Part shown: in pieces, positions 1 to 23,800 of the stretch
Layout: the number at the start of each line of letters is the position of its first letter
Numbering within the stretch: position 1 is the first letter of the stretch
Origin: Klebsormidium nitens
Taxonomy: Eukaryota > Plantae > Klebsormidiophyceae
Direction: 5' to 3'
Assembly: GCA_000708835.1 (NCBI GenBank)
Contig: DF237060.1
Location: 1 to 64,000 of the forward strand
DNA: 64,000 bases
Translations under genes and position numbers: made by a program
Notes under the pieces: generated by a model
Database searches by the model: none
What the model was told of the DNA's origin: nothing
Seen by the model: the letters and a program-made list of their open reading frames with translations, nothing else

Positions 1-553
1 TGGCACGATCCAGTCGCACCCAAACAGTTCTGATTGATTAAAAAAAACTCGATCCGGAAACCATCTGGGCCCGTTAAATACTAACGGGGGAACGTTTGTT
101 CACGTACTGATCATCCAGTCATGGAGCCGCTAACCGGGGTTTGGGAGATATATTTTAACGAGGTTGGTCGTGAAAGCCTTCGCAGGCTTCAGTGGTGCGA
201 TTTGCTAATCGCTCAACTTGCAACATGTACACACCAGATCTCGCTCGTATTGTCACTGACATCAGTGTCAGTGTTGACATCAATGATCAGAGGCTCTAGC
301 GTCTTCCACTTTTGCCCAGGGCCCCGTGGGGCGCTAGGTATACCGTATTTTCGAAGGTTTGAGGCTTCAGCCTGAGGACGACAAGGTCTGCAAGGTGCGT
401 TTCTGAGGCTGCAAAAACAGCTGCAACACAGCCCCTAATAGGTACAGCACTGGAGGTTCTACAGCATTGCCATGAGTTGGCTGTAGCCCTGCTATATCGA
501 GCAAAGGGTATTAAACACGCCAGCTGCAGCTTGAGCCTGAGGGTCAGGACACC

Positions 554-1613
554 ATGGCCTCGTCTCACCCAAAGAAGCGCGTGCTCTTTGTATGCAGCCA
601 CAACTCAAACCGTTCCATTGCAGCACACGCTGTCGCTAGAAAGCTCCGTCCAGACCTTGAAGTACAGAGTGCAGGCACGGCAGCAGCGGGGACTCTCAAC
701 CCTGTAATGCTCAGCGCTCTTGAATCCAGGGGGTACTCGACAGAAGGCCTCTACTCCAAGGTCAGTAGTTGCTATTCTCTCATCTTGTTTTGTTGCATTC
801 CTTACACTCTGAGCTCTGCTTGATCTCTGCTGGGAACGTCATTCTGGAAGGAGAGGCAATTGCAACGTTAATATGGAGGCGATTGTAGCTGATGATGTGA
901 GAATGCCCAATGTTTTCACTTAGGTTTGTGAGGGAGAGGCCAGGCCCGGCAGTCCAAAGTAGTTGAATGTGCAGGCACTGCTGATCTTTCAATTCATATG
1001 CCACGCCTGCCGCCGCCTGTGATTACGAAGTTGAACTCAACTATCTTAATGAAAGTTCGATTGTCTCTTCCAGTGGACATCTGATGTCCGCTGCTCAGCT
1101 CTTGTTCTCCGGAATCCAGCTCATTCTTCCAATTGCAGGGGATTGATGATGAAGCTGTTCAGGGACTGAACAACAATTGGGACACAATATGCACCATGGG
1201 CTGTCTGGTAAGTTCCATGAAACATATTGTGCTCTTGTTCCTTTACAATCAGTCCATCCGTGTGCTGCTTTGTTTTACCGGACCCAAGACAGCAGACCGT
1301 AGACACAAGAGTGGTCCTGGGGTTCTCCGTGTTCATCTTGTGAGCAGATTGGTTGAGTGCGCATTGTATGCCTGGTCAATTTCTTTCAGATCCTCACCTT
1401 TATGAGAGTTCTTGCAAGCAGGCGTTCACCAACTCTAATGACCGATCTGCTGACTGGTTGTCCATTTTTATGTGCCAGACTAAGGGCCTTCCCTACGACC
1501 CTCCCAAGTCTACGGAGGTTTATGATTGGGCACTTCCTGACCCAGCGGCACAGCCGGAGTTGCTTGACATGGTGGTGGACGAAGTCATCGAGAACGTAAA
1601 GAACATAAAGTGA
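554..1613 (+). CDS. arsC: Arsenate reductase, LMW protein-tyrosine-phosphatase (ArsC) fold, about 136 aa; exons 554-760, 1139-1207, 1479-1613
   Basis: The spliced translation has the P-loop VLFVCSHNSNRS, the SAGT motif, ICTMGC and WALPDP. Both introns are GT-AG and phase 0, and the frame is intact. It lies next to arsH. Confidence 0.85.
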
Positions 1614-2423
1614 TGGTTCTAAAAGGCCGTAGGGAGGAATAGTCGGGTTGTTGCATACAAGCCAACCAATGACACGTCGGGCGCCCTGACCACTTTAACA
1701 CACAAGCGAGTTGGTTGATGTTGGTTTATGTAGAGTTTCGGATCGTTGTCCGGTTTGGTTCATTTTTGAACTTGGAACCTTTTTCAGTCAAAGAAGCTAT
1801 GTCGAGTGCCCCAGAAAATAGACAAGTGCCCTTCGACCAGGGACACAAAGAGCTCATGTGACCTGACAATCTGAGAATCAATATATGCATGCTTTGTTTT
1901 AATTGGAGAGAGGAATTGATTATGTATGCAAGTTGAGGCTTCAAATTACCAACGTTGACTAGCACGTGCGGCCCGCAAATCACTTCCAACCACATGCACT
2001 TGACAGTACGCCTGTGCATATCACATTCATTATTATAAGCAAGTTCGAAACTCAAGTTCGATCGAAACTCAAGTTTAGCATGGGGAGACATGCAATGATG
2101 CAGCATATTCACTAATAAACATCGAAGCTATACCGTCACATTCAGTGACAACAATATATGCAGTCCGACTTATGTCGATCATCATGTGGGAGGATACGGT
2201 CCATGTCCGACAGACAACTCAGGATCCAATCATGTGGGGCGTAACGACCATGGTCTTGCAAAGTTCAATAAGTTAAAAGTCACGTCCAATGGGCCTGATC
2301 GGAATTGTGCTGCGTGCTATTAGAATCCTAATCAAAACGTTGAAGGTTTTTCACTTTGCAACCCACTATTGTACAAAGTACTCTGCTTGGTGGTTTGACG
2401 ACGAGTTAGCAGTTCCTTGATTA

Positions 2424-2633
2424 CAGCTCTTTGCGAGCAGCCTGCCGATTTGAGTTAGAGAGGGAAGCTTAAAAAGTTAGATGCGTACGTTAGTCGCAGA
2501 CCGCGACATTACATTTAGCGAGTCACGACAACTATACAACGTGAGTCCTGGCTTAGTATGTAGCTGTGTAACTTGACTAACTTTCTAAGCTTCCCTCTCT
2601 AATTCAAGTCGGCAGGTTGCTTGAAAAGAGCTG
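2424..2633. mobile_element. MITE (Tc1/mariner- or Stowaway-like), 210 bp
   Basis: Imperfect terminal inverted repeats of about 57 bp (cagctctttgcgagcagcctgccgatttgagttagagagggaagcttaaaaagttag versus the reverse complement of 2577-2633). TA flanks both ends (2422-2423 and 2634-2635), and there is no ORF. Confidence 0.75.
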
Positions 2634-2893
2634 TATCTAGCTCTGCACGTACACTGACATGATCTATCCGACGTGTAGTTCAGACAGACAGTGTGACTAC
2701 ATTCATAGCCACACGGCCGGACCCTAGAGAGGTACTGAAGGCTCATCAGTTTCATTGATGATTGTACTGCCTACAACAAGAATAAAATCTGGCCAACGCC
2801 CGGAGTAGGTCAGCCGCGCTCCACTCCCTGTTTTGATCAGTCTACAAGCTGCATACTGAGCGATGGCTGACGCACGGTTGCCAAGTGCGATGC

Positions 2894-5737
2894 TTAGGTG
2901 GATGCAACAATGGGTTGCTTGACTTTGGCCGCCTCCTTCTCCGCCTGCGATAAAAGCCGGCCCTTCTCCCGCTTCTCCTTCCGTTCACTGTATCTATCTA
3001 CCAGAAACTGCGCATGCTCTCTCGTCAGCAAAGTGAACTTGTAAAACTCTTCCGCAACGTCGACAACCCGATCTCGCAAGCCGCTCGCTTTCATACGACC
3101 CCGCTCGTCAAACTCTGTCCACGCCTTTGGAACGGAAGACTGGTTGGGGACGACAATCATGCGCATCCACCGACCGAGCACTCGAAGAATGTTGACGACG
3201 TTGAAGCTTTGGGAGCCTCCATTGACCTGAAGAGAAAAGATACCAGATTTAGTATCCGTTTTATAATCTTAAGTAAAAGTTCTCCAAAAGTTGACGTTGT
3301 TTGCACTTTCGAACCTTGAAGAGAACCGAATTCACATGAAAAGCAAGTCGGAGCGGAAAGCCTATAACTTTTATAACCGCTCTACCAATCACAGTGAGTA
3401 CAGTCCGTTCGTACTTAGGCAGCCAAGCTGAATCCATCGAGACCAGGCGACAAGCTGAAGGGTGAAGATCGAACGAGAGAATAGGTAGGTCACGTCGGTA
3501 CTATAAGGTCACGTCGTTACTATTCCACTCCTTGCTTTTGAAGTGGGCGTCGAATCCCAAACCTCCAGAGGTGCACACTCAGTGAGTCTGATTCTTCATT
3601 TGACAAAGCAGATCAAAGTTCGGCCAACTTGGGCCTCCAAAACCGTAGATCCCCTGGTGTGGACACGCGTAATCATTTCAAGAAGCTCGCACTTCATTGG
3701 AAAAGCAAGAAGCCCAGAACCGGATAGCTCAAGTGACATCAGAGCACTCGGAGCGTCTGACCAGAGCCAGTACCTGAGCGATGCAGAGCGTGCGTCCTTG
3801 GGTTGGCCGTACGGACCCCAGGTTGAGCGGGATCCAATCAATCTGATTCTTGAAGACGGCAGTGATGGTTCCGTGCTGCTCCGGAGAGACCCACACGTGG
3901 CCTTCGGACCAGACGGACAACTGCCGGATCTCCTGCACTTTGGGGTGCGCGTCCGATGTCTCGTCTTTCATTGGAAGACCTCGAGGGTCGAAGACGCGGA
4001 CGTCGCAGCCTGCGGGTTGCGAATGCATTTTCGTCTCGTGCTGGACAGTCCCAATCATCTTTTAGGACGAAGTACAAGGAAGTTGTAGAACTTGTCGTAA
4101 ACCTGGACGGCTTACGCTTCTCGAGAGCGGGGAGATGTTGGTCGTCCTCTCACCGAGAGAATGGGGGACGGCGTTCAGAAAACGATGATCTGGGCTCCTT
4201 GCTCATCACTGTGAATGAGCATGCTGGTCGAAAGCAAACGGAATATATTCTGACGCAAACGAGTGTACAAAAGGCCAATTCGTCGTGCTATACGGAAGAC
4301 TTCGCTTCCTGTTGAGATTCAGATCGCAATTAGGAAGGGAGAAGGAGTTGCCGACCCGATTTCAGAAGAGTTTAAGATTGTGCTGAGCCTACGATGGGTC
4401 AGAATACGATGGGTCAGAACACGTACTGAGACCTTTGCTAAATGTTTTGACGCTAGGATACTGATTCAACAACCAACGGACTGGCATCCTTCGTCCAGGC
4501 TCAGATCATCTTCGAGGTGACGTTTTTGAGAATGAGGAGGCAATCAACCCGTTCCTCAACATCAGCCCTGCTTTAGGGAGCTTAACAAGTTTTGGGAAGC
4601 ATCAGACAGCCTAGTTGCTTACCAAGCAGATCGAGAATGCGCGCAAACTCGTACGCCAGCAAGCGCGAGTAGGATCTCTCCCGGAGAGAGCCATACAGGA
4701 CGAGGATCTTTGGGGGCGTCGTGATGCGCTGGCCCCGCGGCTGGAAACCCTGCGCCGACTCCAATTCCAGGTCCTTGACCCAGTCCGAAGCTCTGTGCTG
4801 CTCCGACAGCCGGAACACTTTGTACGGGGATGCGGCTTCGGGGACTTCCTGCAAAAGGCTAGGGAAGGAGGTAACACTAGAGACCACACCCAAGTCATCA
4901 GTTGCTTTACAATCTTGTCCTGTTTCCTGGAAGAAGAAAATGTCTGTTCATCTCGGTTGGTTGGACATTGAGAAAAGGGCTCCAGAAACAAGAAAAGGAT
5001 GATGACTCTGGTCCCTTGTTTGAGCGCTCATCGTGCTGAGAAACAACCAATTTTAAAGCGCCCAGACAGCGTTCTGACCGGGTCAGACAGGCATCTACTT
5101 TGCCCAACCTTTTCAGGGTGCCCCGGTGTGATAGGAGGGCCGAATGGGCTGCATGATAAAGCCAAACCCAGCGCAGAGATTGGAATGCAGGGGACGAATT
5201 TTGCCCGCCCTTCTGGAGCTCTCCCCATAAGCACGCGGAATGCAACTGAAGGCCGAGGCTGACTGCAAGATTGGCGTTGTGACTGCCCCATTCCAATCCT
5301 TACTTGCAGCCCTTACACAATCCTGTTGAAAACTTGCAACAAGATCCGAAAATCAAGTACAGCTCATATGATGCAAACCCAATTTCAAACCAATCCTGCT
5401 GTACTGCTATTAGTGGTGTCTCCTTAAATTTGACCTCTAACATCCTATTTGATGTCACCCACGGAAGAAGGCCAGACGGTGCAACAAGAGTGCAGCTGTG
5501 CAAACGCACAGATGGGCTCAGAGTCAGAAGCGCAACACCCAGCTTTTTTGCTTGATTGATGGGATTGAGTGGGCACACCAATCTTTAACGCTTGGCAGCC
5601 CTGGCTTGACCTACCGGAATGGGGGCTGCATCTGATGCTCCTCTTACGTCAACCTGAGGCGCAGCACCGTTGGCCTGCGACACTCCTGGGTCAAGCGGTG
5701 CTGCCGACCCCTCTGGCCGCTCCGCGCTTCTAGTCAT
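2894..5737 (-). CDS. arsH: Arsenical resistance protein ArsH (NADPH-dependent FMN reductase / organoarsenical oxidase); exons 4848-4623, 4009-3774, 3226-2894, plus a probable first exon starting at gccATG 5737
   Basis: The spliced translation contains [91 protein letters not shown] and DRYSER. Exon phases are compatible. The first exon ([10 protein letters not shown]...) is tentative and has phase-0 donor candidates near 5650 and 5614. Confidence 0.92.
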
Positions 5738-7432
5738 GGCGAAGAGTGGGCGCAGCGAACAACTATTCTGGAGGGCAATTCTGCAAGGAGAGAGCCTCTG
5801 TCAGCTGAAGAAGCCTGCTTAAGGATGACATTATTGATTGGCTCAGAGCGGTCGCCAGGGCCCGAGTTCAAGATCATACTAAATGAGAGCCCCCAACAAA
5901 GACACAGCCTTATGCCCAGGCCTGGTATGTGATATTTGGATGGGTGGCTTCTGATCCGAAGTTTGGCTTGCGTGTATTTGGAAAGATTTGCACGCGTGTT
6001 CTGCACTTTTCCATACGTTTCCGCTTTGTGATGCGGCTTCGAAGTACAACCTTGGCAGGCAGGCGGCCACAATAAAGTGTTCCGAATACCGAAAAAACCC
6101 TATCATCCACGGACAAGCCTATGCTGGGGTCAACAGGCAGTTCTTGTAGCCCGTCCTCTTTGTTGAACACACCAGACTTTGTGCACCAGTCTCATCAGTA
6201 GGTGTGTCTCTGAAAGTTGCTAGCTTTCTACACGCTTGCTACACGCTGGCGCCATATCCAAAGTATTGATTCTTCTTGCACAGGATAGCGTTTACAAACC
6301 CAATGCACCCAATGCCGCTGCTAGAAATGGTCCTTTTGTTGTCCTCAGGAGTGACTCCCTCATGGGACTCCCTCCCACCGCGCGCGGCCGCCGGTGAGAA
6401 GGTTCAACTGATGCACTTCAAACCTTACGAATAGGAAGATCAGAAAGTCAAGTGGATTCTCAAGACAAAGATGGGTAAAATGATGAAGAGATTGCCATTG
6501 TTGCTATATGCTAGTCTTCACCGAAGAGCAGGCGGACAATAACAGTTGGCCAAGTTTTGACATGGCCTCGCTTCATGACAACATTCTCAGGGTATCCCGT
6601 CAGAAGTGCCTTCTCAATACAGTACCGCTCCAGTAACGTGCCTTTCAGAGCCCGCCGCCCCACCTTCCTCTTTCGTAACACAAGCTGCTGGAAGACGATC
6701 GTGACCGCTGTCCAATGCCAGCTACCTTGCAATCCACAAGCAACGATCTTTCCAGGGAACAAGGATTGCTTACCCTCGGATCTGACAGAGGCCAAGGTCA
6801 CTAATGTTTCTTCGCGCTGAGGCTGCTCCGATTCTCAACGACGGAAATGCAATGGCGCTGCTGGCAGTGATCGCCATTCAAACGTGTGCCTCCTGGACTC
6901 CGAGGAGTCGGAGTCTGATAAGAATCAAGATACCCAGCTATAGGCTTCAGTAACACAGGCCCAGGGTGATCCCCTTGCGCATGGAGACACTTTTTTGGGT
7001 TCGAGGGCAGTTGGCTTGACACCGTTTCCCTACTGTTATATAGACCGGCGAATCATCCCGTGCACTCTCCAGCTTGAAACCGGGGGACTTGGACACAGAG
7101 CGGTATACCGGGTTGGAAGATTTGAGGTAGTGTGTCAAGGGTCTGGGACATGGACCGGGTTTCACCAGACATCGGCCTGCCGCCTGACCAAGGCATGCAG
7201 CCTCAGGGGCAAATGTTGCCGGCCAGAAAACAAAGAATGTGGTAGGCTTCTTGAGAATTGGAGGCATTCTAATCCACCCGAAGATGAGCATCCCTGATCT
7301 CTGACTGATGTGTCACTTTTCTACAGCAGCCTCACGCAAGCCGCACCCACCTTGGTGCCAGCTTCAAATCAGCGCAGACTTGAGTATACCACTCGGGGTT
7401 TTGGTGAATACTATCGAGCCTAACATCCAGCC

Positions 7433-10400
7433 ATGGCGGAGGGCTGCGGTTGCGAGAAAGACACGTGCCACATCAGCATCCAGAACCCGCTGACGGCTCG
7501 CGACGCCCCAGGGGACCCGCACGAGGCGACCGAGCTGCAAACGGGGGTGCCCAGTCCCCATTGGTCGCGCCGTCTGATGCGCCATGCTTGCCCCAGAAAT
7601 TGGTGGCAGAGATGGTGGGCACATTCGCAATCGTCTTTGCAGGTGAGGGGCTAGGGTGAAATTATAGGGCTGTAAAGCTTGTGAAATAAGTCAGATTCTG
7701 GGGGGTTCTAGAGTTTTGGGCAGTCTTGCGTTTGTGTTCCAAGTAGAGCTGGAATATCAGTGTGAGTTCTGGGCAACATCAGTCAAAGCTGGGCGCATTT
7801 GCATTGCATCAGCAGTTGAGGGGCTTTGAGATGACCCCAGGGTTCTGAAAAGAGAGAATTTTGAGGCGACTCTGGCAGAATTTGAATGATGGGCACATCT
7901 GCTTTTGGTCTTAGGCGAGGACTAGTTTCCCAGGACGCTCAGTGGGGGTGCCGGAGTCTGAGAGTTTTATGAAGGACAAGAGTTGCGTGCGTATATATGA
8001 ATGTGTTATCAGTGAGGGCTCTGAGGGGCTCTTGCAAGAGACAAATCTGAGACTTTCCGAGGTTAGACTTACGAACTTTAAAGAAGTGGCGGAAAGTGTG
8101 TAGCGGGTTCAGGCCGTGGCCCTTCAAGCTTCTGGTTTGCTACAAATTGTGCGTCAATTGCTTTGTTTGCGTCCCTTTGCTTCTGGCTTGGTTTGAGGAG
8201 CCTATCGTTCCCAGGCTGCCAGTACATCTTCGTTAAGAGCATGGCGTCGTCCTAATACGGAACATCAAGAGGCGCAATGGGTCCTGACTTCTCAAACCAC
8301 CGAGGAACTATTATCTCTGTGTCATCAACATTGAAAAGCCATAACTCAACTGCGACGGCAACAAAGTCTCCCAACCACCGAAACATACTGGGCAAGCAAC
8401 CCTTTGTGCAGCGCTAAACTCTCCTTGCCCCTGGTCAAATAGCCACAGGGAAAACAAGTCCTCTAGCTCAACAATCATAATGGAGCGTCTCTACAAGCCC
8501 TGCCTGGCTGCCCAAGTGCTTTGTGGACTTTCCCAAACGACGATTTTGATTTCTTTGTCAGGCTGTGGGGCGGTCGTGGTCAACGCGCGCTCCCGGGCGC
8601 ACACCTCAACCCCGCAGTCACGCTGGCCTTCGCGTGCGGGCGCCATTTCAGCTGGAAGATGGTGAGCTGGGGGCTCGTTCATGTATTGGCGCAAAACCCA
8701 GTGGACACCTTCCAGTGCAAAGGAACATATTCTATAGACTAAATAATAAGGAGAGCGAAAAATAAGCCCCCAAGCTAATAAAGGTTTACGTGCTCCGCAC
8801 CCGCACCCACCCTTACCCCCTGCCTAACCCCACCCGTCCCCCCACTGTTTTCTACCGTCCACTGAGCTTATTGTGATGTTTCTACATCGCCTGGAACAAA
8901 GCATCCCGGTCTTAAGAAGTGGGTTTGTTGAAGTGAGAGGTTGCGGAAGCATGGGGTAGGTGTGTTTGTTGACGAGCGGATTCAGGACGGATCCTTCTGT
9001 GCATCCTGGGTTCCATTAGGAAAGAGCCTCCTGCGCAAAAGAGTATCATAGATTTCGCTGTTGACGTCTCTGGGGAAACTCGTTTGCCTTTGAGGTACCG
9101 CTTTTCCAAAGCAACTTCACAAACGGACAGGTTGTTCGTCACCATGTCTTTTGCTTCTTGTGTGTCCTTTGCTATTGGAGTCTGTGCAGGTCTTTCGTTG
9201 TTCCCCTGTATGCTCCTCGAAGTTCCGTCCTTGCACTGAACTCAGCACTCTCAGGTTTTGAACAAAGAATCGACGAGCCTCGAGATCAAAACCCCATTTC
9301 GAAGGAGTCTGTTTCTTGATTCAATCTGTTTCTCGTGCTGAAGGCCGTACTCGTCCAACTGACTGAAACAGAGTACGATTTGAAGTTCAAACGCCATTCA
9401 CTTTCCCCCCTCGACCCCAGGTCCCTTTCTACTGGACGGCTCAGTTCGTATCTGCCGTCGCGGGCGCAGCCCTGATCCGCGGGATTCTGGGCTCGGAGAA
9501 AGCGCTCGGGGCGACGGTCCCAGCCGGCGCGGACTGGGAGTCGCTCCTACTGGAGATTGTCCTCACGTTCTTTTTGATGTTCGTGATCGCTGCGGTGGCT
9601 ACGGACACGAGAGCCGTTGGAATGATGGCCGGAATTGCGGTAGGCTTAGTTTCTTTCCGCTCTTTGTGCTCTGGTCTGAACAACGAGCTACCTCAAACCT
9701 TTGAAGATATGGCTTAGTATTTCGAGAAGTGGTGACTGCACGAGAATGCCCGGGAACAACCATTGGACCATGGGTTAGTCGCACAGAGTAAATCTGAAAA
9801 TCGGGTTCGATTTTCGAGGCTTTTTATCTTAATTCCAGAAACTATTTCTTTCTAGATCATTGAGGTGTCAGGGCTTGGGCAAGTCAGGTTGTGGAGGGTG
9901 AGGGCACTTGCTTGATTGTCTCCTTAATCTAGGTACAGTAAGCTTTAGGCATAGTGAGCTCCTACCCTAACACCAAAATCCGAGCCCTTAAAATCACCTG
10001 CTTCGCAACTCGGATCCACCCCAAACCTCCAGAGTAACCGCACCCGTCCCAGCCTGGTTAGCGTAGTACACCTAAAGCTTACCATACCTCAAATGTGAAG
10101 GTTTATGGCAATCGAGCTCAGGGATTCGGGCCTTCCGCATGCACAGCTCTGATATCAAAGCGTGTCTGCAAATGAGAAAGCTCGGCCGCTTTGACGGCTG
10201 ATCTGAGGAACGGATCTTTCTTGGTTTGTCGTCGATCTTCACAGTTGGTTTTTAGTATAGTCGTTGGTTCTTAAGTGCAGCCGCACAGTGCTGAGCTTTC
10301 TTGTCTCTCCATTCCATGCTGGCTTTCTTCCCTCGGCCTTCTTTCGCTCGTCCTCTTCGCTTGTAGTCCAAACGCTTCAGGCTCTGGTTTCGACCTGTCG

Positions 10401-11833
10401 TTTCTAATCGATCTTCAAACCCAGTTTTCCTCTGGCCTCGCACCACTGATAAGCATTTCTCCTTGCAGATTGCCACTTTGTTTTGGGTGGCTTGGAGGGC
10501 CGAGAGGTTTTCTACTTCTCCGCTTTGCCATTTTGATTCCTGGCCTTTCCTTGTCTCTCTACCCCACTCGATGCACACTCCTGATCACCGCCCGCGCAAA
10601 CGAGAAACACACTCTTCTTCACCACCCGCTCAGACGAGAATCGTAAGGCTTTCCTCTGGAAAACCGCTTCTTTTGGCGCTTCAACAGATCGGAGGGACGG
10701 TGGCCTTAGACGCTCTGTTCGGAGGCCCTGTGAGCGGCGCCTCTATGAATCCGGCCAGGTCGTTTGGCCCGGCTCTTGTAGCGCTGGTGAGAAAACAGGG
10801 CCCTCTGCTTTACACATAAATCCGGCCATATGTCAAAACCGTCCGGTCAATCTACTACCGGACCGTTCAGATTCTTTCGGCTTGCTTGGTAGGAGACATG
10901 GAGCACTTGAGACACGTGAGAAAAATTGCAGTTAACCAAAGCTTGGTCAATTTCAGGTTAAGTGGTTTTTACCGTCGAAAACCATACTTGAAGGGCAGGC
11001 AACGAAGTTGATTAGGAACAGAAGTTTCCTGTGAGATGGTCCTCTACGTTTTGGCGTTGCCGGGAAAGCAAGAACACAGAAGTTGGCAAGCGAGTCTGGC
11101 TGGGTTGCAAATAGCTGGCAATTGAGGAGTGCTGATTGGTTAAGAGCTTCCAAAGTTCGATGTTGACTGGGTGTTGCATCTTCCGGGTGCAAGTCGCCAG
11201 GTTCATCTACGTAATTAGCACTGTTGGGAGTCGTTGTGAGATTAAAGTCTTTGCTTGGCAGCCCTCTAGCTCGCATTACACAAATTATTTGCTCTTAACC
11301 ATCTTTGCTTGAGAGCTCCTTAACCAGCGTTTCTATGGTAGAAGACCAGTTAACCAGAGGTTGACCAAGGTTGGTTTATTGCAAAGTGTCCCTGCGATCC
11401 GTTTCATTTGCTCGTCCGAAGGTCACCTGAATAGAACAGTAGCAATCAGCATTCGATTCCTTGTTTGTTTCCTGTCGTCTACGATCATCGTATAGTTGCA
11501 AATAACCGAAAAACGCCGAGCACTTTCCTTGGTCTGCGGGTCGGCATTATTTCTACGATTTCAACTTCCTTGAGGAATATCCGTCTGACGCTTGACGCAC
11601 CATGTGCAACCATAGGTCGTTCGGCTCCATTTGTCGAGCTCTCGCTTGTTCACTTCACTTATGACAACTCCATTATTTCTCAAACCCGGTTTCTCTTTCA
11701 ACCAGGAGTTCCGTGGCCTGTGGGTGTATTTGTGGGCCCGGCGGTGGGCGCAGTGTCCGCCATTTTTGTATACGGTTTTGTGCACCCAAAGGGAATGGAG
11801 GTGGCCAAAGGAGGGCACGGGTGTTGCGAGTGA
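7433..11833 (+). pseudogene. NIP: NIP (nodulin-26-like, AqpN-type) aquaglyceroporin, frame-disrupted in this assembly; exons 7433-7642, 8562-8661, 9421-9639, 10688-10786, 11706-11833
   Basis: Motifs seen: QKLVAEMVGTFAIVFAG-CGAVVVN, GAHLNPAVTLAFA, VPFYWTAQ, LEIVLTFFLMFVIAAVATDTRAVG, GGPVSGASMNPARSFGPALV and LWVY(F)VGP. There are frameshifts at about 7591-7594 and 11729-11731, and TM2 is missing at about 8594. Family identity is secure; pseudogene versus assembly error is not. Confidence 0.85.
8790..8845 (+). repeat. Short dispersed repeat (gctccgcacccgcacccac...ctaaccc(c/t)acccgtccc)
   Basis: Near-identical copy at about 61510-61560 and a weaker inverted copy at about 15070-15115. Confidence 0.55.
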
Positions 11834-13014
11834 AGAACCTCTCCACATGCAATGGAGCAAATGAGCTGGTTTTGTTCCACATATGTCGATCTATGAAGCG
11901 CTGTATAGATGTTGAGATTGATTATTCGAGAGAATGCGCAAACTGTCAGCACCTTGCTGTCAATCGCTATCTTGCGGAAAAGTCAAATTGGGTTTGGGTC
12001 AAGATAAGACGACAAGGTTAGATAGTGTGAAAGGGACGCGGGAGTTAGGATCGTTGCTGCTTGGCAGTGGGCCCCAGTCTAAGTAACATCGCCTCACACG
12101 GTTTATAACCATTTACATCTCTTTCTGGACGTCATCACCATTGACGAGATTCTTGGTAACTTTTATCAATGAGCATTCAAGTTCAAAGCGGCTTGCTGAG
12201 TCAAGTTCCAATACAAGGTACAATCTCTTTGCGAATGGTATGCTGCAGACAAGTTTATACATGCATGGTGCTAAGATAGCTAGTCGGCAAACTGCATATC
12301 ATACATGCATGGCATGGCCGCCGGACTATACTTAATTTGCTTCCATTGGTGCATGTTGCAACACCTTGCACTTGGGTGCACGTTGAGCCACATGGGGACT
12401 CGAGTTCAACTTGTGTCACGGTGGGGCCTGTCATTATGCCAGGTCTGATATAATCTCTCATTTTAGTAAAGCTGGCGCATTAAACTTGCATACGGTTGCC
12501 ATTAGATTGATGGAACATCGCGCCGCGGCCATGCAGGCAATTCCGCGCGTGTGAATATAAACTTGACGTACCTCCTGCGGCTGAGGCCTCGAAGGGGGAC
12601 TCACCGTCATCTACTATACCGGGAATGTTGAACATGCTGGCACAATTGCAACCAGATGCATGTACGTTGACCTTTTATGTACTGATTCCAAACAAATTCG
12701 GAGGGGTTGTGTTGTTTTAGGTGGCCTCGATCGGTTATGCAGGGGGCTCAGGCTCCACGTCGACTGAGGACCGTGCCAGCGGAGGAACGCCTTATGTCAA
12801 AGTCAATGCTTAAAATCCCAACATCCCAATGAAAAGAAACAATAGGACTACACCTTATACGTGTCTGAGAGTGCGCAGCAAAGAAGCATTCAATGACCAC
12901 CACCTACTGCCTCTCATGATAATTGAAAAATCACTAGATTATGCTACAGAATATCAGCTCCATCAAAATAGCAATTGTCCCTATCTTACAAAGCACTTAG
13001 CATTAATCGAGTGC

Positions 13015-16000
13015 CTACACGCGGCCAATTGCCTCCTGCAACGAAACTGCTCGCGGGCACACATGAAGCTTCTTGCAAATCAGCCTAGGGTCCATTACCG
13101 CGTCAAGACTCTGGAAGATGACAGGAGCGTACTCTGCAATCGACTCGGTGCACTGCAAGGGGAGACTTACAGAGTCAGCATGTATGCAGTGGACACCTAT
13201 TGGCATTGACAAGCTGAAAAAGCAAGCTAGTTGAGACCTCGTCTGCCACTTTCGCCAACATACCGTTGAAGGCCTCAGTTGCACCAGGGCAAGCGGAGTG
13301 CACCAACTCAAACGAGGGTGACAACAAGGCTCTGAGAAGATGCTGATACAGGTGTTGGAATTTCAAGAAGGGTGACGCGGTCCATTTCGGACGATTTTAG
13401 ATTCGGACGCGCAGATTCAATTTCAAATTCAAAAGATCTGATCACGTATATGGCTGTGCGAGCGCCTGTGAATCATGTGTCGCGCGCCCGTGCTACTCTC
13501 AATGCGACATCGAAAAGCCACGCTCGGAGGGCTGCAGACCTACTTATGAAAGTACAAAATCGGATCTCAAGTCAGAAACCAGGTTCGTCATGATTGAGCG
13601 CACCAGTCTTCCAAACATCCAGAATACCGGGCCTTTTTCGTCTTTGATGAGCAAAAATTTGGAAATCAGCAGCAATGGAGTGATTCGCACCTGCGCAGCC
13701 AGGTTGGGCATGCGGTTGCAGGTCTCCTCCAGGAACTGAATCACCTTCGCCTGCACATAGTCAACGACGAGGTTAAGCACGTGACTGTCTTCGTTGCCCG
13801 TCCTTTTGGGTCGAAAAACTGAATTGAGAAGCGTTCAGCGAGGAGATACCCGCTGACAACGGGCCAGTGTACTGGAATACTCAAATGGGTCCAGAACGGG
13901 TCTGAACGGGCGCTTAACAAACTGAGCAAACGCTCCCTATGTCCAGAGCAGGTCCCGGCTGAATCTTTACACTTCTGACAAATCCTGGATAGGTGTTTTT
14001 GGACCTAATTCCGCACCACAAGCTCCCTATCAACGTCTGAAATTTTTAACCGGCCTTAAGATCCAACATTTTCAAAAATGTTCGACGGCACCTTGATGAC
14101 AATCCAGATCACCAAGCGCCAATCGCACCTCTCAGCAAACCACATCTAAGAACCCACCTCAAGTCACATCACGCCTCCTCAACTGGAGCTTAAACTGCTC
14201 CAACGTGAGGGTTCCAGCAACACAAGAGAATACTCAAGTAGGAGCATTCCCATAACGTTCTCAAGAAAGCAATAGCACTCCAACGCCCCACTAACGCTCG
14301 CTCAAAGGAAACGTTTGCGAGAAAACCTCGAAAGAAGTTCGAGGAATCACAAGCACCCGAAAGCTGCATCAAACTTTCACCTGCCTCTCAGGCTGCTCCA
14401 ATTGAACGTGGCCTCAGCAAAACTTGCGGGGATTCGAAGGAGAACTATTTCCAGGACTGACATTCGAAACGACAAGCACCCGAAAGCCTCGGCTGACTCT
14501 GACCTGCGTCTCGGGCTGCTCCAGCGTAAACCACCACTGCACAACGGTCAGCAACATACAGAAAGGAACCAAAGCCGAATGATTCCGAGAACAATCTCGA
14601 CGGCACGAAATAAAGCGGTAACACCCAGCTAAGACAAGCACCCAGATGCTGCACCGATTTCTAACCTGTGTCTCGGGTTGCTCCAGCTTAAATCTGACCT
14701 CCAGTACCGGCCCCAACAACACTCAGCACAACCCAAAGCAAACAAAAACGAATAAAAGCGTCCAAATCTCCGAACAGATTCAAAAACGACAACTACCGGA
14801 TGCCCTGCTAAGACTCACCTGCGTCTCGGGCTGCTCCAGCTTGAACCTGAGCTCGAGCACCAGGAAATGGCACATGAGGCACTCGTCCTTGTTCGCAACG
14901 GGACCGCCCAGCTCGAAGGGGCAGAACGACAAGATGTGGCACAGCTCCGCGGGGGTGATTGTCTGCATGACCGCCAACAGCTGCGGCACGTACTCGTCGA
15001 CGGCGGTGTCGCACTGGGGGAAAAATGGAGGGAAGAGGGTTTGAAAGCGAGTTTTACTGATAAGGAGGTGGACGGGTGGGGTTAGCATGGGGTTAACGTG
15101 GATTAGGGTGCGGGGCAAGTCATGTTATCTCTGAGAACCTCCTCGACAGTAGATCCATGAAAGATCCATTCTCCATGGTCACGCGTGTTGGGCCGCTGTT
15201 ACAAGGCAAAAGGGCTGTGACGCACTACCTGGTTCAGAGAGTTTGCATGCCCAAAAGTCATCCAGTATAACCGGTCTGTCTCCGCCCTTTCTCTCTCTCT
15301 CCGCACTTTCAACATTGAAGTTAGCCGAGCAAGGTGCAGATGACCGCTTTTGAACCTCATCGCTGGTTACATCTCACTTGCAAAACGTGGTTTTTCCAAA
15401 CTGTTCGAGACAATACGCCCCCCCTCAGTATACGGCAAAAAACACCTTGCCACAAATGATCTTGTGGCAAGTCAAGTGCAGCTCACCCAAGGCTATTATG
15501 CAATCACAGGTTGTGAAACAACCATTCTATCTCAAACCCTGTCGATCGAGGCAACACCAAGCAAGCAACGAAAACAAGGCAGAGACTGGTGGACTGTGTG
15601 GACTCACCTGCGCCCTAAGTTCCGGCTTCTTCACATGCAAGCAGGCCGTATGTGCGACCGTCATAATCTGGACCTGAGTCTGCAAAGGGACCGGAATGAC
15701 GTCAGGATGTCTCTAGTACAAAGAGGCACTTTTACCAACTGAAACGGATGCACGGCCGTCCTCTTATACATAGGTCGGTTCACATATGCCTCAAAAAAAT
15801 AACTCGTATGCACTGGGCGCAGTGCTGTAGATGAGCGGCACACACAATACGAGGATGGTGGAGCGAATGACGAACAACACTGCATGCTCGAGAACGAAGC
15901 TTGCAGCCTCAATTTGGCAAATCTTTGTTGTAGACCCCACTTTTGAAGCCCAGACAGCCCCAGAAATCAACATACCTCCCACAAAAACAGCGACAACAAG

Positions 16001-17669
16001 AACATATGTATGCAGATAGGCATCCCCTATCACCCTGCTGTGTTGAGCGAAGACATATATTTATTGCGAATTTTCTCCAATCAGGGAGAGAGAGGCCAAA
16101 CGGACCTGGTTCGAGGCGAGGTATGCGATGAGCGAGGTGGCGGCGTATTGGCACAGCTGGCACTCCTCCTTGCCCGCCAGCACGTGCTTGGCAAGCGCAA
16201 AGAGGGGGGGCACCGGGCATACAGCGCCGCAGACTTTAGCGGGGGTGATCTCTGTGGCCATGATCTGGAAGAGCGCGGGAATGTACTCCTCCACTAGTTC
16301 GCGGCACTGTAGACAAGGATGAAAAGATGAAGCAACAGTTGCCGGAAGCCATGACTCTGGGATTGTTGAGCGCCTTCTTGACAGGGCCTTTCAGAGAGGC
16401 CTTTTTTCCGAGAGAGAAGACAAATATGACTTAGGTAATGAAACGGCAGGAACGAATATAAGGCAGTGCCAGTGGATCCCAGGGCAGTGCTCCTTGAGTA
16501 GAAGCAGCTTGGCATGGAAAGAGATATGGACGCTAGGTGCACTTAATCCAAGCAATTGGAGGCACCCACAAGGTGACACTCGGACGTCAAATGAAAGCTG
16601 CGGTGGCTGAAACAGCATCCAAAACTTCTGATAATATCATTCAAAAACCTGACGGGCAACGTCTCAACTGAAACCAAGACTTTGATGCAACCTACACAAG
16701 GACTTATGAATATCAAAACGTGTCCGATCAAAGCCAGCGTGGACCCACAACAAATCCAGGACACCCATCAACCTGTCACCTTACTGGTAAGCGAAAGATA
16801 TTGCTTACCTTGGACACGAGCTGGGGATCGACGAGCTTGAGGCAGAGCTGACTTTCAGCAAGCGACACCACAGCGTTGATGTTGTCGGGGTCTGTCAGAA
16901 CCACCTGAGCCTCCAGGATCAGCGTCTCACACGCCTCGCAGAGCTCAGTGCCCTCTAGGGGCGCTGATTGGATGGTCGCAGGGCGGAATCCTGCAGATTC
17001 AAACAGGATAAGGCAATCAGGTGACAGAAGCGCGGCATATCAGGAGCGCTTTGGTATCGTAGGCTCTTGCAACAGTTTCTTAAAGAGTTTGACAAGCGAG
17101 AGTTGGAAAATTGGCGCAGACTGATTCGAGCCGACTGACCATGACAACCACACGGGCAAAAAAATCTACTTGATCGACTCAAAGTTGAGCCGTAAAAGGA
17201 CGCCTAAGATGAATGCTTTGGAATCGATCAGGCTTCAAACCACGATGGTTGTTTCAATCAGTTCCCCACCGAAATACGTGTGGGGCACTCCCATAGCTGC
17301 TGTCGATACTATTGACACCAAGGCCCTTCACAGATTCGGCACAACAGGAAAAGGGGCCAATCTAGAGGAGACTACATCAATTTTCTAACTTCAAGATGAT
17401 TTATCTAATTGCAAACAGATTCAAAAAGGTGGTTCCTAATTGTGGTCGTCAGCTGCCACAAGGTGCTCCAATGACTGCCCTTTTGCCCTCAGCAGCCAGA
17501 AATCACGACCTTCAAGACCGCACCCCTAGAGACGGAACATTGCACAACTTGCAGACCATAGTTGAGATTACTCACCTGGTCCAACCATGTGCCTGCCCTC
17601 AGCAACTCCGCCCAACAAGACGATGCAGGTAAGAGCCAAGGCCATAAGGAGGCCAATCTTTGCAGCCAT
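13015..17669 (-). CDS. Secreted prosaposin-like protein with three saposin-B domains; exons 17669-17576, 16990-16809, 16306-16106, 15679-15608, 15013-14819, 13750-13691, 13152-13015
   Basis: Signal peptide MAAKIGLLMALALTCIVLLGGVAEG, then three units of CxxC ... C ... C-x-x-x-V/I-x-x-Y-x-P ... C ... C (CEACE, CQLCQ, CLMCH). GT-AG junctions are in phase. Confidence 0.85.
14350..14714 (-). repeat. Degenerate tandem copies of the saposin exon-5 3' end plus donor site inside the following intron
   Basis: ctg(c/t)gtctcggg(c/t)tgctccag-like copies at about 14376-14413, 14499-14532 and 14661-14714, versus the true exon end at 14819. Confidence 0.8.
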
Positions 17670-18211
17670 CCTGATGCAGATATGTACGGAGCTGACGATG
17701 TTTCCTTCCCTCTCCCTTCTTGGAGGTGGTAAAAGCCTACCGGTATTAGGCGCAAGCAAAAGCAGAAGCAAATGTCAAGAACAGCGCTGCACAACGGAGG
17801 AGCTCAGCTGGTTTTGACAACGGAACTGACACTCAGAAACATCTCGTGCTTAAGGACGGAGTATCCCATTCCACTTGTGTCAATCCAGCCCGGGTGGCAG
17901 CAGGAGAAGCTTGAAAGTTTTGCCGTGCAAAGCGCACCACCTTCACTGGCTTCAAGTTCAGTCACCTTCACTGTCTGTGTCACAAAGTGGAACGCACGCG
18001 CACAGCAGTGCATGGCCGTCTCTCTTCTGTCGCAAGTAGGTATTGAACATTCTCACAACATTGCATGAGAAGCTGCTATTTCATCCAGACGTGCTGTTCT
18101 GGCATTAAAATCTCTGCTTTCTGGAGGTGCAAGCATTGCTTGTGCTCACCGCCTGTAGTGCCACCTTCTGGGCATGGTTGCGGATGCGTAAACGCCTTTC
18201 CTGACGGCAAC

Positions 18212-20082
18212 ATGGCGGCATCTGGTGCCTGCCTCTTGAGAAGTTCAACGCTGCAAGGGCTGAGCAGCTGCAGATACAAACGTGTAAGCCCTCATGGTTC
18301 AGCCAACCCACAGCAGAGTCTTTTCCACATAGAGCGATTGAATAGCCTTCCTTACACCAAGTGCCAGGGACTCATATCAAAGCGATGGGGAGTGGATACA
18401 ACTTCGTTTGGCAAGGAGCAGCTGCGGTTGAGGAGGGGGGGCCGCAGTGTAGTGGGGTGTCGAGCAGCTGCTGATGTGGAATATGCTCCCTCTGAGGTAT
18501 GCGCACAATTCTGTTTCTCATAGCTTGAAGTCTGTCATCCCTGACGGAGTTTGTGCTGTCTTTCTCATGCTGTCCGATTGTATGTAACTTTTGCGATGCC
18601 ACAAGGCGCGGGCCACAGTCTCGTCAGGCTTTCAAACATGAAGGGGCTTTGTAACGGCACAGCATTCAAGCTCCAACAAGTGAAGTGGCAGAGTCACCTG
18701 CTGCTCCGCTGGTTCCTGGAGAAAATGACCAGGCTCTTGGTGTTGCAATCTGTGGCGGTACTACTCAACCTGTTGACACACAGAAAGGCGTGGACACTCT
18801 GGGTCCCATATCGCTTACACGAAGAGCATCCGTTTGGCTTTCTCGGCCAGCGCGCGATGGTGTTTGGTGGTTGATTGCAAGCTTTACTGAGAAAAGAGTC
18901 AATGCTTGCAAACAAAATATCTACTTACCCGTTCTGGATTTTGTGACGCGGGGTGCCTTATGAATACTGGATCCCTGTATCATTAGTGCCACCATTTGTC
19001 ACCCTCTATCGACCACTGAACAGGATAAAAATATTCACGTTTGGAGACAAGCCCCCATATTGATAAGCTGATTGGTGTCAAAGCCAACGTGTACCATAGA
19101 CGCACGGAAGACTGCGAGCGCCTCAGGCTGGTTTTGAGATGGAGCCAGCAATTCTCACAGTCGCTAGTCCGCGCTGACTTGATTCTGAAAATAGTGGTAT
19201 GTGCCGAGCTGATTCACATTCTCTCTGTCCTCACAGGAGCGGGCCCGAATTGCGCCATGCGAACAGGCCCCAACCCGTGAGGACCTCGTGAGCGGAAACT
19301 GGCTGGACAAAGCAGACCAGCAGGGGATGCTAGTCGCGGAACGGTTGGCGCTTGGGGCGCAAGACATCGAGGACGAGCTTCTCGCGCCGGAGCGGCTCAC
19401 AGAAGACGAGATCGCGGAGTTCCACGAGGATCCGAACGTGGCGCTCATTCTGAACCCGGGGGGCGACCTGGTTGGGACGTACATAGGTTCGGAGCAAGCA
19501 GTTGCGTGGGTGAAGAGCCTCGACTCCGAGGCAGCGGTCACGTGGTTTTGGAACCGCTTAGAGGAGGACAACTACCGGCGGTTCATGGCGAAAGGGGGGG
19601 ACTGGTGGAGGGGCGACGAGTGGGAAGAGAGACCCCCCCATTGGTACGAGTACCGGCGGAAGGATGGGAAGAGGGTGGTGTGGGGGCAAAAGAGACGGAT
19701 AGAATCCCATTCAGTCGAAGAGTTTACCACGGATACACTGGAGCGAGTGGCACGATTTCTGGTGTTCCACGAAGAGGGGAAGGGATCGCTCGCGAGCCAA
19801 CCGGAGGGCTCGGTGGGGCGGTATTTGCGGGACCGGATACTGGAGAGCAAGGCGTGTTGGCTCGTGGATGGGACGATAAGCCCGCCCGTGTCCGAACTAG
19901 AGGCGGGGGATGAAAAATGGCCTGAGTACATGCAGCGGAAGTGGAAGGAGTTCAAGGAGGGATTCATGGAGAACAAGTATGATGCGTGGAGGCAGGGGGT
20001 TGCGATTGATGATAGGATCGGGCAGCAGTACTATGTGCCAAAGAAGTTTGGCTGGAAGGGGCCGGTGCACAGGACCATGTAA
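18212..20082 (+). CDS. Unknown protein with a probable plastid transit peptide; exons 18212-18496 and 19237-20082 (a middle exon is possible)
   Basis: Ser/Arg-rich N-terminus MAASGACLLRSS...GCRAAA with donor gag|gtatgc at 18497. The acceptor tcacag at 19236 opens a long, intact, Trp/Glu-rich ORF. No domain recognised. Confidence 0.65.
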
Positions 20083-20848
20083 TTGTTTTTATATAAGATG
20101 CCAAGCGGAAGCAGGGACAGCAGGACCTGCTTAATATCGATAACACCAATCCTTGTAATGGTAGGTGAAGAGTGGTTGCGGTCTCCTTTAATCCGCCCGC
20201 CTGCTTGAGTCTGCACACGGGCTGGAATTGGATCAGCGTTTGCCATCTCGTGCAGATTGTCATGCTTTGCACCAAGGCTGAGCTCGATCCAATGATGAAC
20301 GCATAAGTCTACTTCGATCAAATTCAGAATTATTAAAGCGGCCACGCCAAAGAACAGCAATGTGATGCATCATACAACTGGTGGCAAGCTGCAGCTCAAC
20401 GTATGCTGCTCGATGATACACACGCTTAGCATATACGCGCAGATTCATGCAAATGCAAACTGTTTGAGTAGTGTAAACATTTATAAGCATGTGCAACAAG
20501 CCTTGAGTCGCCATGCAGACCTACAATTCAGAATCATGAGAGCTCAACACTGCCAGCAATGGTCATTATCAGTGTTGATTACACAGAGGAGTCATGATCG
20601 AATGCACTTGCGGATATGATATATACGTGCTTCTTAAGTGACCTCCAGCGTAAGCCATGTATGGTTACCATGCAAGGGGTAAGCGCGAGTGCTTCCATGA
20701 TCGTGAATGGTACAAGTTTGGAGCCATGGCATTTGACCTTGATTATTTCGGAAGCTGCCCGAAGGGCCAAGTCTTGCAACTGCGACCCAATCGCGGCTGA
20801 CAAAAAAACGTGGACCGACAGCAACCGACTCCAACCTTTCTTCCGCGT

Positions 20849-23800
20849 CTAATACTCACTTAACACCTCTCCAATTCTACTTCGCCTTTCCACCGCTTTC
20901 GGGTCTTCCTGGAAACCTAGCGCTTCCATCAGCTTAACTACCGTGGTTATGCCTAGTTCGTAGTTTTCCCTCCGACTCCGCCGTAGTAACCCGTCTAGAA
21001 CCGCCTTGTCCGGAACAAAACCCCTGTTCACCATATCTTGAAGCGTCACCAGGGCTTTGGCGGGATTCCGGTTGATGACGTGGGCTGACACCAGCAACTC
21101 CCAGGAGCGCTTGTTGGAAGTTACGCCGGACGCCTCCATCAACTCAAACGTGCGAACGGTCGCAGCGACCTGGATCAAGAGAGACGACGATAAATGTGAG
21201 GGAAAAGTTTTGAAATTTAGCTAACGTCCGTGTGACCTGAAACCCGAGACGAACCGTCTAAGGGACAGGCGGGTTACCTTGATGAACTAAAGAAGTAAGA
21301 GGCCGACGCCTGGGTCGCATTTTGTTTGTATTGTGCTGTTTGAGAGAGGATTCTGCGCCAATTACACAGGTTATCTCAGAAGTAGCATCAGCACCCGAAG
21401 GAAGAAACGTCAGCTCCAGCGGGTTTCAGAATGCTCGCAAGTCAGGAGCCATCAGCTTTTCAGTATCACAAGATTGGCTCAAACAACTTCCACAGGTTCC
21501 CGTTTCCGCGCCAACACAGTATATATCTTTCAAGCTCAGACGCCTCACAATATCAAACCTTCTAGCCACTCGAGTACCTCGCCCAGAGTTTTCCCTGCTC
21601 GAAAAAGCCCGCTAAGCTTCCCGGTCTCAACTGGCGCGCCTGGTCACATCCGTCCAGAAGCAATCTGTAGAACTACGTGCTTGACTTCACAAGCACTTAG
21701 CCAACACATTAACTCGCTAAGGATCCCCCAGCCCGAAAGCCCCGCTAAGCTTCCCCAACCTCACCTGGCGCGCCTGCCCACATCCATCCAGAAGCGCTCT
21801 GTGAACCTATGTGCTTGACTCCACACCCACTTAGCCAAGACAGCATCTCGCTAACACTCTCTCCGTCCAGAAAGCCCGCTAAGCTTCCCCGCCTCACCTG
21901 GCGCGCCTGCCCGCAGCCGTCCAGGATCGCGTTGTACGAGTGCACGTCCGGCTCTAGTTTGAACGTCCGCTGGATCTCGTCGAAGGTCTGGAAAGCCCGG
22001 CTCATGTCGCGCACGTTGACGCAGCCCTGGATGATGCAGTTGAGGCCCAGGAGGGGCACCCGCTGACCCGCGTCGTGCATCACGGTCAGCACGTAGTACG
22101 CCTGAAGGGTTAAGAATTGGGTTTAGCGTCCGACAGCAACTGCGCATTGTGAATAACCCGTAACAAGCTATTTGAGTAGGCCTGTAGACAAGCGGGAATT
22201 AGGACCAAATCTTAAAAGCTGCAACCCCATGAAAGGCACCCGCTGCCCCGCCTCATGCATCACGGTCAGCACGTAGTACGCCTGCAAGAATTTACTGCGG
22301 GTTAAGCGCAAGGTTAAGGAGCAGGAATTTGGTGTCAGCTTCTCAGAAGTGGAGGCCCAGGAGAGGAACCCGCTGCCCAGCGTCGTGCATCACGGTCAGC
22401 ACGTAGTGCGCCTGCAAGGGTTAGGGATGCCTTTAGCGTCGACAAAGAGGGGTTTTGTTGTCGAGAAAGAATTCAGGCTTTGCCAACTCTGAGGCGTCCT
22501 GGAAGAGGCGCGCGGTGATTAAGCCCAAGGTTACACGTCAGATTAAGCGTATGGTTGTAAAGCTGAAGATCTGGCTTTCAGCGTCTCAGTGGTGAGCCCA
22601 AACGAGGCCTGCCTTGCCTCGAATGCACGCAACCTGGCAACGCACGCCCAGCGATACCAGCACGAACATTGCCCACGTAGGTGATTCCGAAGTGCAGTGA
22701 AGTTGGGAAAGGCTTGGAAAGTGTCGGGGTGAATTAAGAAATACATGGTGAAATGCGAACATGAGGCCCAGAGGGGCACTGGCTGGCCCGCCCCGGCGTG
22801 GGAAGCAGCCTGCGATCCGCCTGGCTCGCCCGAAGCAAACGGAACCGGCAGCTCGAGTAGCACGAGATCGTTGTATCAGGGATGGCACACGAAACGCCTC
22901 CAAACGGGAACGCAGGGCCTACTGATGCGTCTGACCAGGAAATGTCTACAGCCGCACGTTTGACCGGCCCTTTCAAGAACAGGCTTATACGACCCCAAGA
23001 AAGAGCCTGATTGCCGCAGCTCGGGCTGCTTTAAAAGACTCTCACGCATGTGCGTACAATCACTGCTAGTGCGAGACGCAGTCGGTTTGTGGGAAGACGC
23101 TGGACGCGTGCACCCGAAACGGAAGCAGGGACTCAATTCCTCCGGGGAGGGCGGGTATGCAGAATAGGGACCAAGATTCCTGACCTCCGGAAACTTTCTC
23201 GATCTGGGGAGCGATGACGGGCCCGAACATAGAATCTGAGCCCTCAGTTTGCATCGAACGACGCTCGGCTGCCTACTAAAGAACCATTGGTCGCCTCGGG
23301 GGGCATTTCAAAGACAGGCTCAAACCCCCTACCGCAAGTTCCTGAGATCACGTTGACTTGTACCGGGCGCACTGAGATTTGACGCAGCCTTCAAGAAGGG
23401 GTACGGCACAGGTAAACTACTACCCCCTACAGTAGCTTCCTGAGATCAGGAACGTCCCGAGATCCGGAACCTGAGATCCAGTTCTGGTCCCTATTCTCCA
23501 TACCCGCCCTCCCGGGGTCGGTTCTTGCACTCCGTGCGTCAAAAACGGGCCAAACACCAGCGGAACGAGGCACGGTAACGATTAGTGCAAGGCGGAAAGG
23601 TGGAATGCGCGCGCACCTTGTCCAGGGCTTTGAGCCGCCGGCTGAGCCTGGCAATGAGCCACTTGTACGACTTAGCGGGGTCCAAAACCAGGTCCGCCTC
23701 CTCGGGATCCATCTCTGCTAGCCGGGGCCCCAAACTTTCCTGCAAGGGAAGCATAGGAGACTCTGGATTGTCCGTCGAAACTGGCAACTCCTAGGTATTT

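Follow-up and report, generated by a model that had tools for sequence, protein, structure and literature searches.

A probable arsenic-tolerance gene neighbourhood in Klebsormidium nitens, with ArsC, ArsH and a transcribed NIP pseudogene

We analyzed the first 64,000 nucleotides of scaffold DF237060.1 of the streptophyte alga Klebsormidium nitens NIES-2285 (assembly GCA_000708835.1, forward strand), hereafter the window, which begins at the scaffold end and whose first 12.2 kb carry three spliced and transcribed genes: an arsC (136 aa, + strand), an ArsH gene (354 aa, - strand) and a gene for a NIP/AqpN-type MIP channel (+ strand). An earlier note, made from the sequence alone, had identified these three genes and described them as a complete arsenic-detoxification module; the genes are as described, but the module is not complete in NIES-2285, given that the NIP gene is dead by three frame-breaking deletions, yet transcribed and correctly spliced. 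Collectively, the observations below make it probable that the locus is an arsenic-tolerance neighbourhood in which ArsC and ArsH were accompanied by a co-regulated NIP with an F-A-A-R selectivity filter, recently dead here, and that an ancestral ACR3-ArsC-ArsH-NIP cluster was assembled from separately acquired genes. In such a neighbourhood, the predicted ArsC would reduce As(V) to As(III), ArsH would act as an NADPH/FMN enzyme like its bacterial homologs, which oxidise trivalent organoarsenicals, and the intact form of the NIP, judged by analogy from its filter, would belong to an As(OH)3-permeable channel type.

Transcript support was taken from Logan contigs of four RNA runs, each from a different study, which were aligned to window positions 300-6200 and 6600-12500. 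The splice joints of all three genes are canonical GT..AG (seen as CT..AC for the minus-strand gene), RNA contigs and genome agree with zero mismatches, and each gene has a separate transcript. The strands of the three genes alternate (+, -, +): arsC and ArsH are immediate neighbours placed tail to tail, with 3´ ends ~350 bp apart, and ArsH and NIP are divergent, head to head, with 5´ ends ~340 bp apart. The locus is nuclear and eukaryotic, as attested by spliceosomal introns, expression and membership of the scaffold; bacterial contamination, which the earlier note had also discounted, was rejected on the introns and the expression.

Exon 3 of the NIP gene matches rice NIP2;1 (7CJS) at E = 8e-20, and the next family, TIP, follows at 4e-4. 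In the window copy, no single frame encodes an intact MIP with six helices and two NPA boxes. Relative to the native ATG (frame 0 of the mature mRNA), helix 1 lies in frame 2, the segment running from the first NPA box to the second in frame 1, and helix 6 with the C-terminus in frame 0 again, and ~27 residues are missing between 'GCGAVVVNA' and 'GAHLNPAV'. Base-level nucleotide alignment with an intact ortholog from a relative (L008, below) resolved this pattern into three deletions, the second of which removes helix 2 (Table 1). RNA contigs of all four runs cross the three lesion sites without a difference and span 8559-8660 without a gap. Since these contigs match the genome at every lesion, there is neither an assembly error nor a repair at the RNA level, and both assembly error and RNA editing were rejected as causes of the frame breaks.

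We considered whether the channel could nevertheless be functional, with the frame breaks being assembly or annotation errors or being bypassed by editing or frameshifting. Such a reading could point to the sum of the deletions (1 + 82 + 1 = 84 nt), a multiple of three, by which the spliced stretch 7433-11833 keeps a 250-aa open reading frame (ORF) from native ATG to native stop, and to the GenBank annotation of a NIP at this locus. Yet between lesions 1 and 3 that ORF does not follow the frame of the MIP core, helix 2 with its 27 codons is physically absent, and four independent studies agree with the genome at all three sites, which leaves a functional channel extremely improbable; the multiple-of-three sum is probably a coincidence. 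What GenBank lists as GAQ82426.1 ('Nodulin-26 like Intrinsic Protein', 211 aa; window 7584-11864) covers no more than the ORF in frame 1 of the pseudogene transcript and lacks helices 1, 2 and 6.

An exhaustive search with NIP exon 3 returned this annotated 211-aa protein together with ORF fragments of two relatives. One contig of a Klebsormidium-like relative (L008; Logan SRR23617307) is collinear with window 4693-12306, carrying the 5´ exons of ArsH on the minus strand followed by a NIP on the plus strand, so that the head-to-head layout of the window is kept. The NIP of this relative is 279 aa long with six helices and two NPA boxes, and a second relative (L009) also encodes helix 2 in frame. 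Over 248 codons, the comparison of the window NIP with that of L008 gave a synonymous divergence (dS) of 0.34, a nonsynonymous divergence (dN) of 0.044 and a dN/dS of 0.13, and by these measures the ortholog is judged to be under purifying selection. Since constraint prevailed over most of the divergence, the death of the NIP in the NIES-2285 lineage was recent.

The aromatic/arginine filter of the L008 NIP reads F-A-A-R; the same reading gave the expected GSGR and WVAR for control NIP2- and NIP1-type sequences. The window copy retains A-A-R, the H2 filter position being deleted. F-A-A-R is also found in metagenomic AqpN-like proteins and in a Diphasiastrum NIP, and in a 26-sequence tree the L008 NIP grouped with AqpN-like proteins (94/83), beside the land-plant NIP clade (94/84), with weak deep nodes; its nearest relatives in the tree are metagenomic AqpN-like proteins. 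The filter of the intact ortholog is in line with the AqpN-like archetype to which the earlier note had assigned the channel. With F-A-A-R and two NPA boxes, the L008 protein resembles archetype plant NIPs such as that of Diphasiastrum, from which it differs in having Cys-rich tails (N-terminal CGC...C, C-terminal GCC), and from which the window copy differs in lacking helix 2. These tails (window 7433-7471 and 11810-11830; L008 2383-2421) are conserved in the L008 NIP and absent from the AqpN and NIP proteins compared. Vicinal cysteines bind As(III). In Marchantia, a Cys-rich N-terminal tail of ACR3 is an arsenic sensor (preprint 10.1101/2025.04.13.648538).

Table 1. Features of the locus, in window positions.
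Feature	Positions	Strand	Details
arsC transcript	312..1930	+	exons 312-760, 1139-1207, 1479-~1930; RNA joints 760/1139 and 1207/1479 in 4 runs
arsC coding sequence	554-760, 1139-1207, 1479-1613	+	136 aa; identical to NCBI model 554-1613; PF01451
ArsH transcript	2282..6890	-	exons 6774-6890, 5615-5780, 4623-4848, 3774-4009, 2282-3226; CT..AC joints 3226/3774, 4009/4623, 4848/5615, 5780/6774
ArsH coding sequence	6877-6774, 5780-5615, 4848-4623, 4009-3774, 3226-2894	-	354 aa, as in NCBI model
ArsH-NIP intergenic stretch, candidate bidirectional promoter	6891..7231	.	in RNA contigs, ArsH ends at 6886-6892 and NIP starts at 7232-7267
NIP/AqpN-type MIP, transcribed pseudogene	7232..12188	+	exons 7232-7642, 8562-8661, 9421-9639, 10688-10786, 11706-12188; four GT..AG joints, 4 RNA runs
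NIP ancestral ATG	7433	+	frame 0 of mature mRNA
NIP lesion 1	after 7580 (7580..7581), exon 1	+	1-nt deletion; shifts the frame between N-terminal tail and helix 1
NIP lesion 2	after 8593 (8593..8594), exon 2	+	82-nt deletion; 27 codons (helix 2 including H2 filter residue) and one base lost
NIP lesion 3	after 11728 (11728..11729), exon 5	+	1-nt deletion; frame shift inside helix 6 (WVYFVGP region)
NIP ancestral stop	11831-11833	+	helix 6 and C-terminus in frame 0

The proteins of the window were searched as exons, stop-free stretches or ortholog identifiers, and the family tests for ArsC used a full-length ortholog (P0002) that shares 91% identity in exon 1 and agrees with the splice model. 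Against ArsC models P0002 gave E = 5.5e-11 to 3e-8, versus 1.3e-3 for the phosphatase Wzb, and its PDB matches to E = 3e-3 are exclusively arsenate reductases, led by Corynebacterium glutamicum ArsC1´ (3T38) and Synechocystis ArsC (2L17-2L19). The P-loop of the window protein, C14-SHNSN-R20-S21 (C-x5-R-S), is invariant among five algal homologs, as is Cys91 (TMGC), which aligns with the first resolving cysteine, a counterpart of the second one being missing; the redox cysteines used for comparison were Cys82/Cys89 of the thioredoxin type and Cys80/Cys82 of the Synechocystis type. The D113-P motif (LPDP in P0002), the expected site of the general-acid Asp, lines up with its counterpart in 3T38 and 2L17 and does not vary in the algal homologs either. 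Judged on sequence, the window ArsC is closer to arsenate reductases than to generic low-molecular-weight phosphotyrosine phosphatases (LMW-PTPs), in agreement with the earlier note, and we assign it to a divergent, two-cysteine subfamily of LMW-PTP-fold enzymes with predicted arsenate reductase activity. All ArsC relatives above 60% identity are algal, one of them a Mesotaenium protein, and a word-based search with the ArsC ortholog returned algal relatives only and zero bacteria.

The ArsH family assignment is unambiguous at the level of profile and structure matches. Three exon pieces match TIGR02690 (2e-40, 1.3e-11 and 3.9e-34), covering profile positions 9-219, with scores of 44, 138 and 118 bits that, although the pieces were scored separately, roughly sum to ~300 against a cut-off of 292. 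The nearest PDB structures to the 78-aa ArsH exon are 2Q62 (Sinorhizobium meliloti ArsH; 1.8e-32), 7PLE (1.3e-30) and 2FZV (4.8e-26). The 354-aa protein, which is also the annotated one, corresponds to an upstream in-frame ATG at 6877, and the first codons are conserved in L008. The bacterial-type core is preceded by an N-terminal extension of ~125 aa (window 5615-6877, - strand) that begins MAITASSAIAFPSLR; this extension is Ala/Ser/Arg-rich and resembles an organelle transit peptide. We also noted, in all four RNA runs, an unspliced contig across the ArsH intron 4849-5614 (window 4820-5643), about half as deep as the spliced form; retention of this intron would bring the reading frame to a stop soon after the exon. 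In the 3´ untranslated region, three of the four runs had minor RNA contigs with a 1-base deletion variant at window 2445.

Evidence for a fourth member came from relatives. ArsC homologs on four contigs (L001-L004; 87-94% identity) have a divergently oriented ACR3 ~1.8-3 kb away, and L004 probably is the ortholog of the window ArsC locus, since it was found in the run that also gave L008 and has introns that align with the window's. An 88-kb eukaryotic contig from an ENA metagenome (L007) carries, at 9659-14573, intron-containing ArsH, ArsC and ACR3 genes in the same relative order. In BLASTP, its LMW-PTP gene, the ArsC, shows no similarity to that of K. nitens, which agrees with repeated, independent recruitment of reductases. 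The ancestral cluster in the Klebsormidium lineage probably was ACR3-ArsC-ArsH-NIP, put together in the algal lineage from separately acquired genes, and linkage of ACR3 in the K. nitens genome itself would follow from the arrangement in relatives. The 553 bp upstream of arsC are the scaffold end; further cluster members beyond it are plausible because ACR3 sits upstream of ArsC in relatives, and a look-up of the window arsC ORF in public contigs for its upstream flank found nothing. With its NIP broken, As(III) export in NIES-2285 would have to rely on ACR3.

Judging from the head-to-head geometry only, ArsH and NIP most likely are co-regulated, with a shared promoter region as the predicted means. 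Several observations weigh against this view or against the wider reconstruction. The ArsH-NIP intergenic sequence is poorly conserved. ACR3 was not found within the 64-kb window and lies on other scaffolds in this assembly, where its genes are kfl00534_0030 and kfl00804_0040. The best score of P0002, 42.7 bits, is far under the equivalog cut-off of 157.6 (TIGR02689, NCBIfam), and the third redox cysteine is not conserved, Cys87 being present in Klebsormidium and replaced by Phe in the Mesotaenium homolog. A second ArsH copy from the same sample as L008 (L006) has no NIP upstream, and an ArsH locus from another sample (L005) and the L007 cluster are also without NIP, so that ArsH-NIP linkage was seen in one relative only. 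For L007 the NIP is missing within 10 kb of the cluster, and tblastx of L005, L006 and L007 against the window detected no synteny past ArsH. A metagenome scan for further Klebsormidium-like NIP loci returned only more distant AqpN-like loci, with 49-65% identity.

These points raise the alternative that the NIP lies beside ArsH by chance, unrelated to arsenic, and that the functional neighbourhood consists of ArsC and ArsH only. The lack of a NIP within 5-10 kb of ArsH in L005, L006 and L007, the apparent harmlessness of losing the NIP in the reference strain, and the silence of the published neighbourhood analysis (PMC7826186) on any NIP here would all fit. Against chance, the head-to-head layout is kept in L008 at a dS of 0.34, and F-A-A-R NIPs and bacterial AqpN proteins are linked to arsenic, both by the genes around the closest full-length bacterial AqpN-like protein and by the position of aqpN beside arsC in most bacterial loci (below). 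If the gene total of K. nitens is roughly 16,000, as we take it to be, ~2 NIPs and ~6 ARS genes give rough odds of ~1 in 1000 for such an adjacency. The counts are those of published surveys, two NIPs (2018 preprint 10.1101/351064) and ~6 ARS genes (PMC7826186). We therefore regard chance adjacency as unlikely and favor an arsenic-tolerance neighbourhood that included the NIP.

Part of this locus has been described. Foflonker and Blaby-Haas (2020; PMC7826186) reported 'ArsH-type' neighbourhoods (ArsB/ACR3, ArsH, ArsC) in Chromochloris zofingiensis, Coccomyxa subellipsoidea and K. nitens. Their table gives kfl00111_0010 for ArsC and kfl00111_0020 for ArsH and puts ArsB on scaffolds 534 and 804, and they count a single 2-gene cluster for K. 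nitens. These are the first two genes of scaffold 111 (DF237060.1), hence the same locus with the same inferred roles. The ArsC-ArsH part has accordingly been known since 2020, and to it we add only RNA-supported gene models. In contrast to our analysis, that study makes no mention of the NIP, of the 5´ region it shares with ArsH or of its decay, and where it counts two genes, the relatives examined here suggest that ACR3 once belonged to the cluster too. Its authors argued for de novo assembly over transfer of an intact cluster, with algal ArsCs nearer to various bacteria than to each other and phylogenies indicating different donors for each gene. New in our searches are the conserved head-to-head ArsH-NIP pair, the F-A-A-R filter of the intact ortholog and its Cys-rich tails, the fact that the NIP of the reference strain decayed recently, and the likely four-gene ancestral cluster. 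Our literature search, which did not cover Pommerrenig et al. 2020, found no paper tying a NIP to an ars cluster; bacterial aqpN-arsC pairs are reportedly described in that work.

The bacterial context was surveyed from both ends. Around the nearest bacterial ArsC-like genes (80 loci, 33-39% identity, collected with a peptide pattern biased to Streptomyces), ACR3 lay within 8 kb in 38 loci and a MIP directly upstream in two. Around AqpN-like genes (80 metagenomic loci, L094-L173, 49-65% identity to NIP exon 3), an LMW-PTP arsC was directly adjacent in 60, and in 27 of the 33 loci of at least 6 kb; ArsH or ACR3 was found in none of these 80 at E 1e-6, and ArsH in none of the 160 bacterial loci of the two sets. 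Many of the ArsCs beside AqpN-like genes carry a ~75-aa N-terminal domain as in C. glutamicum ArsC1´ (3T38). The closest full-length bacterial AqpN-like protein (P0139) is encoded among ArsR, ACR3 and methyltransferase genes. Since aqpN stands beside an LMW-PTP arsC in most of these loci, the pairing of an AqpN-type channel with ArsC mirrors that in bacteria. The likeness to a bacterial ars operon drawn by the earlier note holds to this extent.

These contexts bear on a further alternative, in which the cluster is the relic of a single transfer of a bacterial ars operon (aqpN and arsC, with or without arsH) that founded the plant NIPs. Besides the frequent aqpN-arsC adjacency, it would account for a best PDB match of the algal ArsC that is of the same ArsC1´ type (3T38) and for the bacterial F-A-A-R filter kept by the NIP, and in the ArsC tree the closest bacterial sequence to the algal clade is an ArsC of Dehalococcoidia (L083), whose gene has a MIP directly upstream. 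However, a stem of 1.42 substitutions/site leads to the algal ArsC clade (100/99), which reaches at most 42% identity to bacterial ArsCs, the join to L083 is flagged as a possible long-branch artefact, and the MIP at the Dehalococcoidia ArsC loci is ~32% identical to the window NIP; with long branches meeting, the ArsC tree named no reliable donor. None of the bacterial loci combined ArsH, ArsC and aqpN, the three algal genes have their own transcripts on alternating strands, the other algal ACR3-ArsH-ArsC cluster (L007) has no NIP and an ArsC without detectable similarity, and the published phylogenies point to a different donor for each gene (PMC7826186). Our comparisons gave a single-operon relic no positive phylogenetic support, and on balance we hold it to be quite improbable next to assembly from separately acquired genes.

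The S. meliloti ars operon is arsR-aqpS-arsC-arsH; its aqpS codes for a GlpF-type channel and its ArsC comes from another family. Like bacterial aqpN/aqpS ars operons, the K. nitens locus brings together a channel suited as an As(III) exit and an arsenate reductase, with ArsH too as in S. meliloti, and the filter of its intact ortholog is the F-A-A-R of AqpN; unlike them, its genes are separate intron-containing units on alternating strands, and the channel is broken in NIES-2285. With the ACR1-ACR2-ACR3 cluster of Saccharomyces cerevisiae it shares the form of a eukaryotic cluster of separately transcribed arsenic genes that include a reductase and, in its probable ancestral form, ACR3. The yeast reductase is of the Cdc25/rhodanese type, and the yeast cluster is not known to hold ArsH or a channel. 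Downstream of the NIP, the annotated genes at window 13015-21864 encode a saposin-B-domain protein, an unnamed 376-aa protein and a PPR protein, none of them arsenic-related.

For studies of the aquaporin family, GAQ82426.1 could mislead surveys and is unsuitable as a functional algal NIP in trees or assays, for which the intact ortholog of the relatives should be used. The descent of plant NIPs, which include boron, silicon and arsenic channels, from the AqpN channels of bacterial arsenic operons rests mainly on phylogeny and bacterial gene context. That Klebsormidium holds a eukaryotic descendant of a bacterial aqpN-arsC unit, possibly from the transfer that founded the NIPs, is a long shot; if true, it would stand as a surviving halfway stage from the arsenic efflux channels of bacteria to the nutrient NIPs of plants. 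A streptophyte alga with an archetypal NIP paired to ArsH, near ArsC and probably ACR3, would offer a testable eukaryotic case for the AqpN origin.

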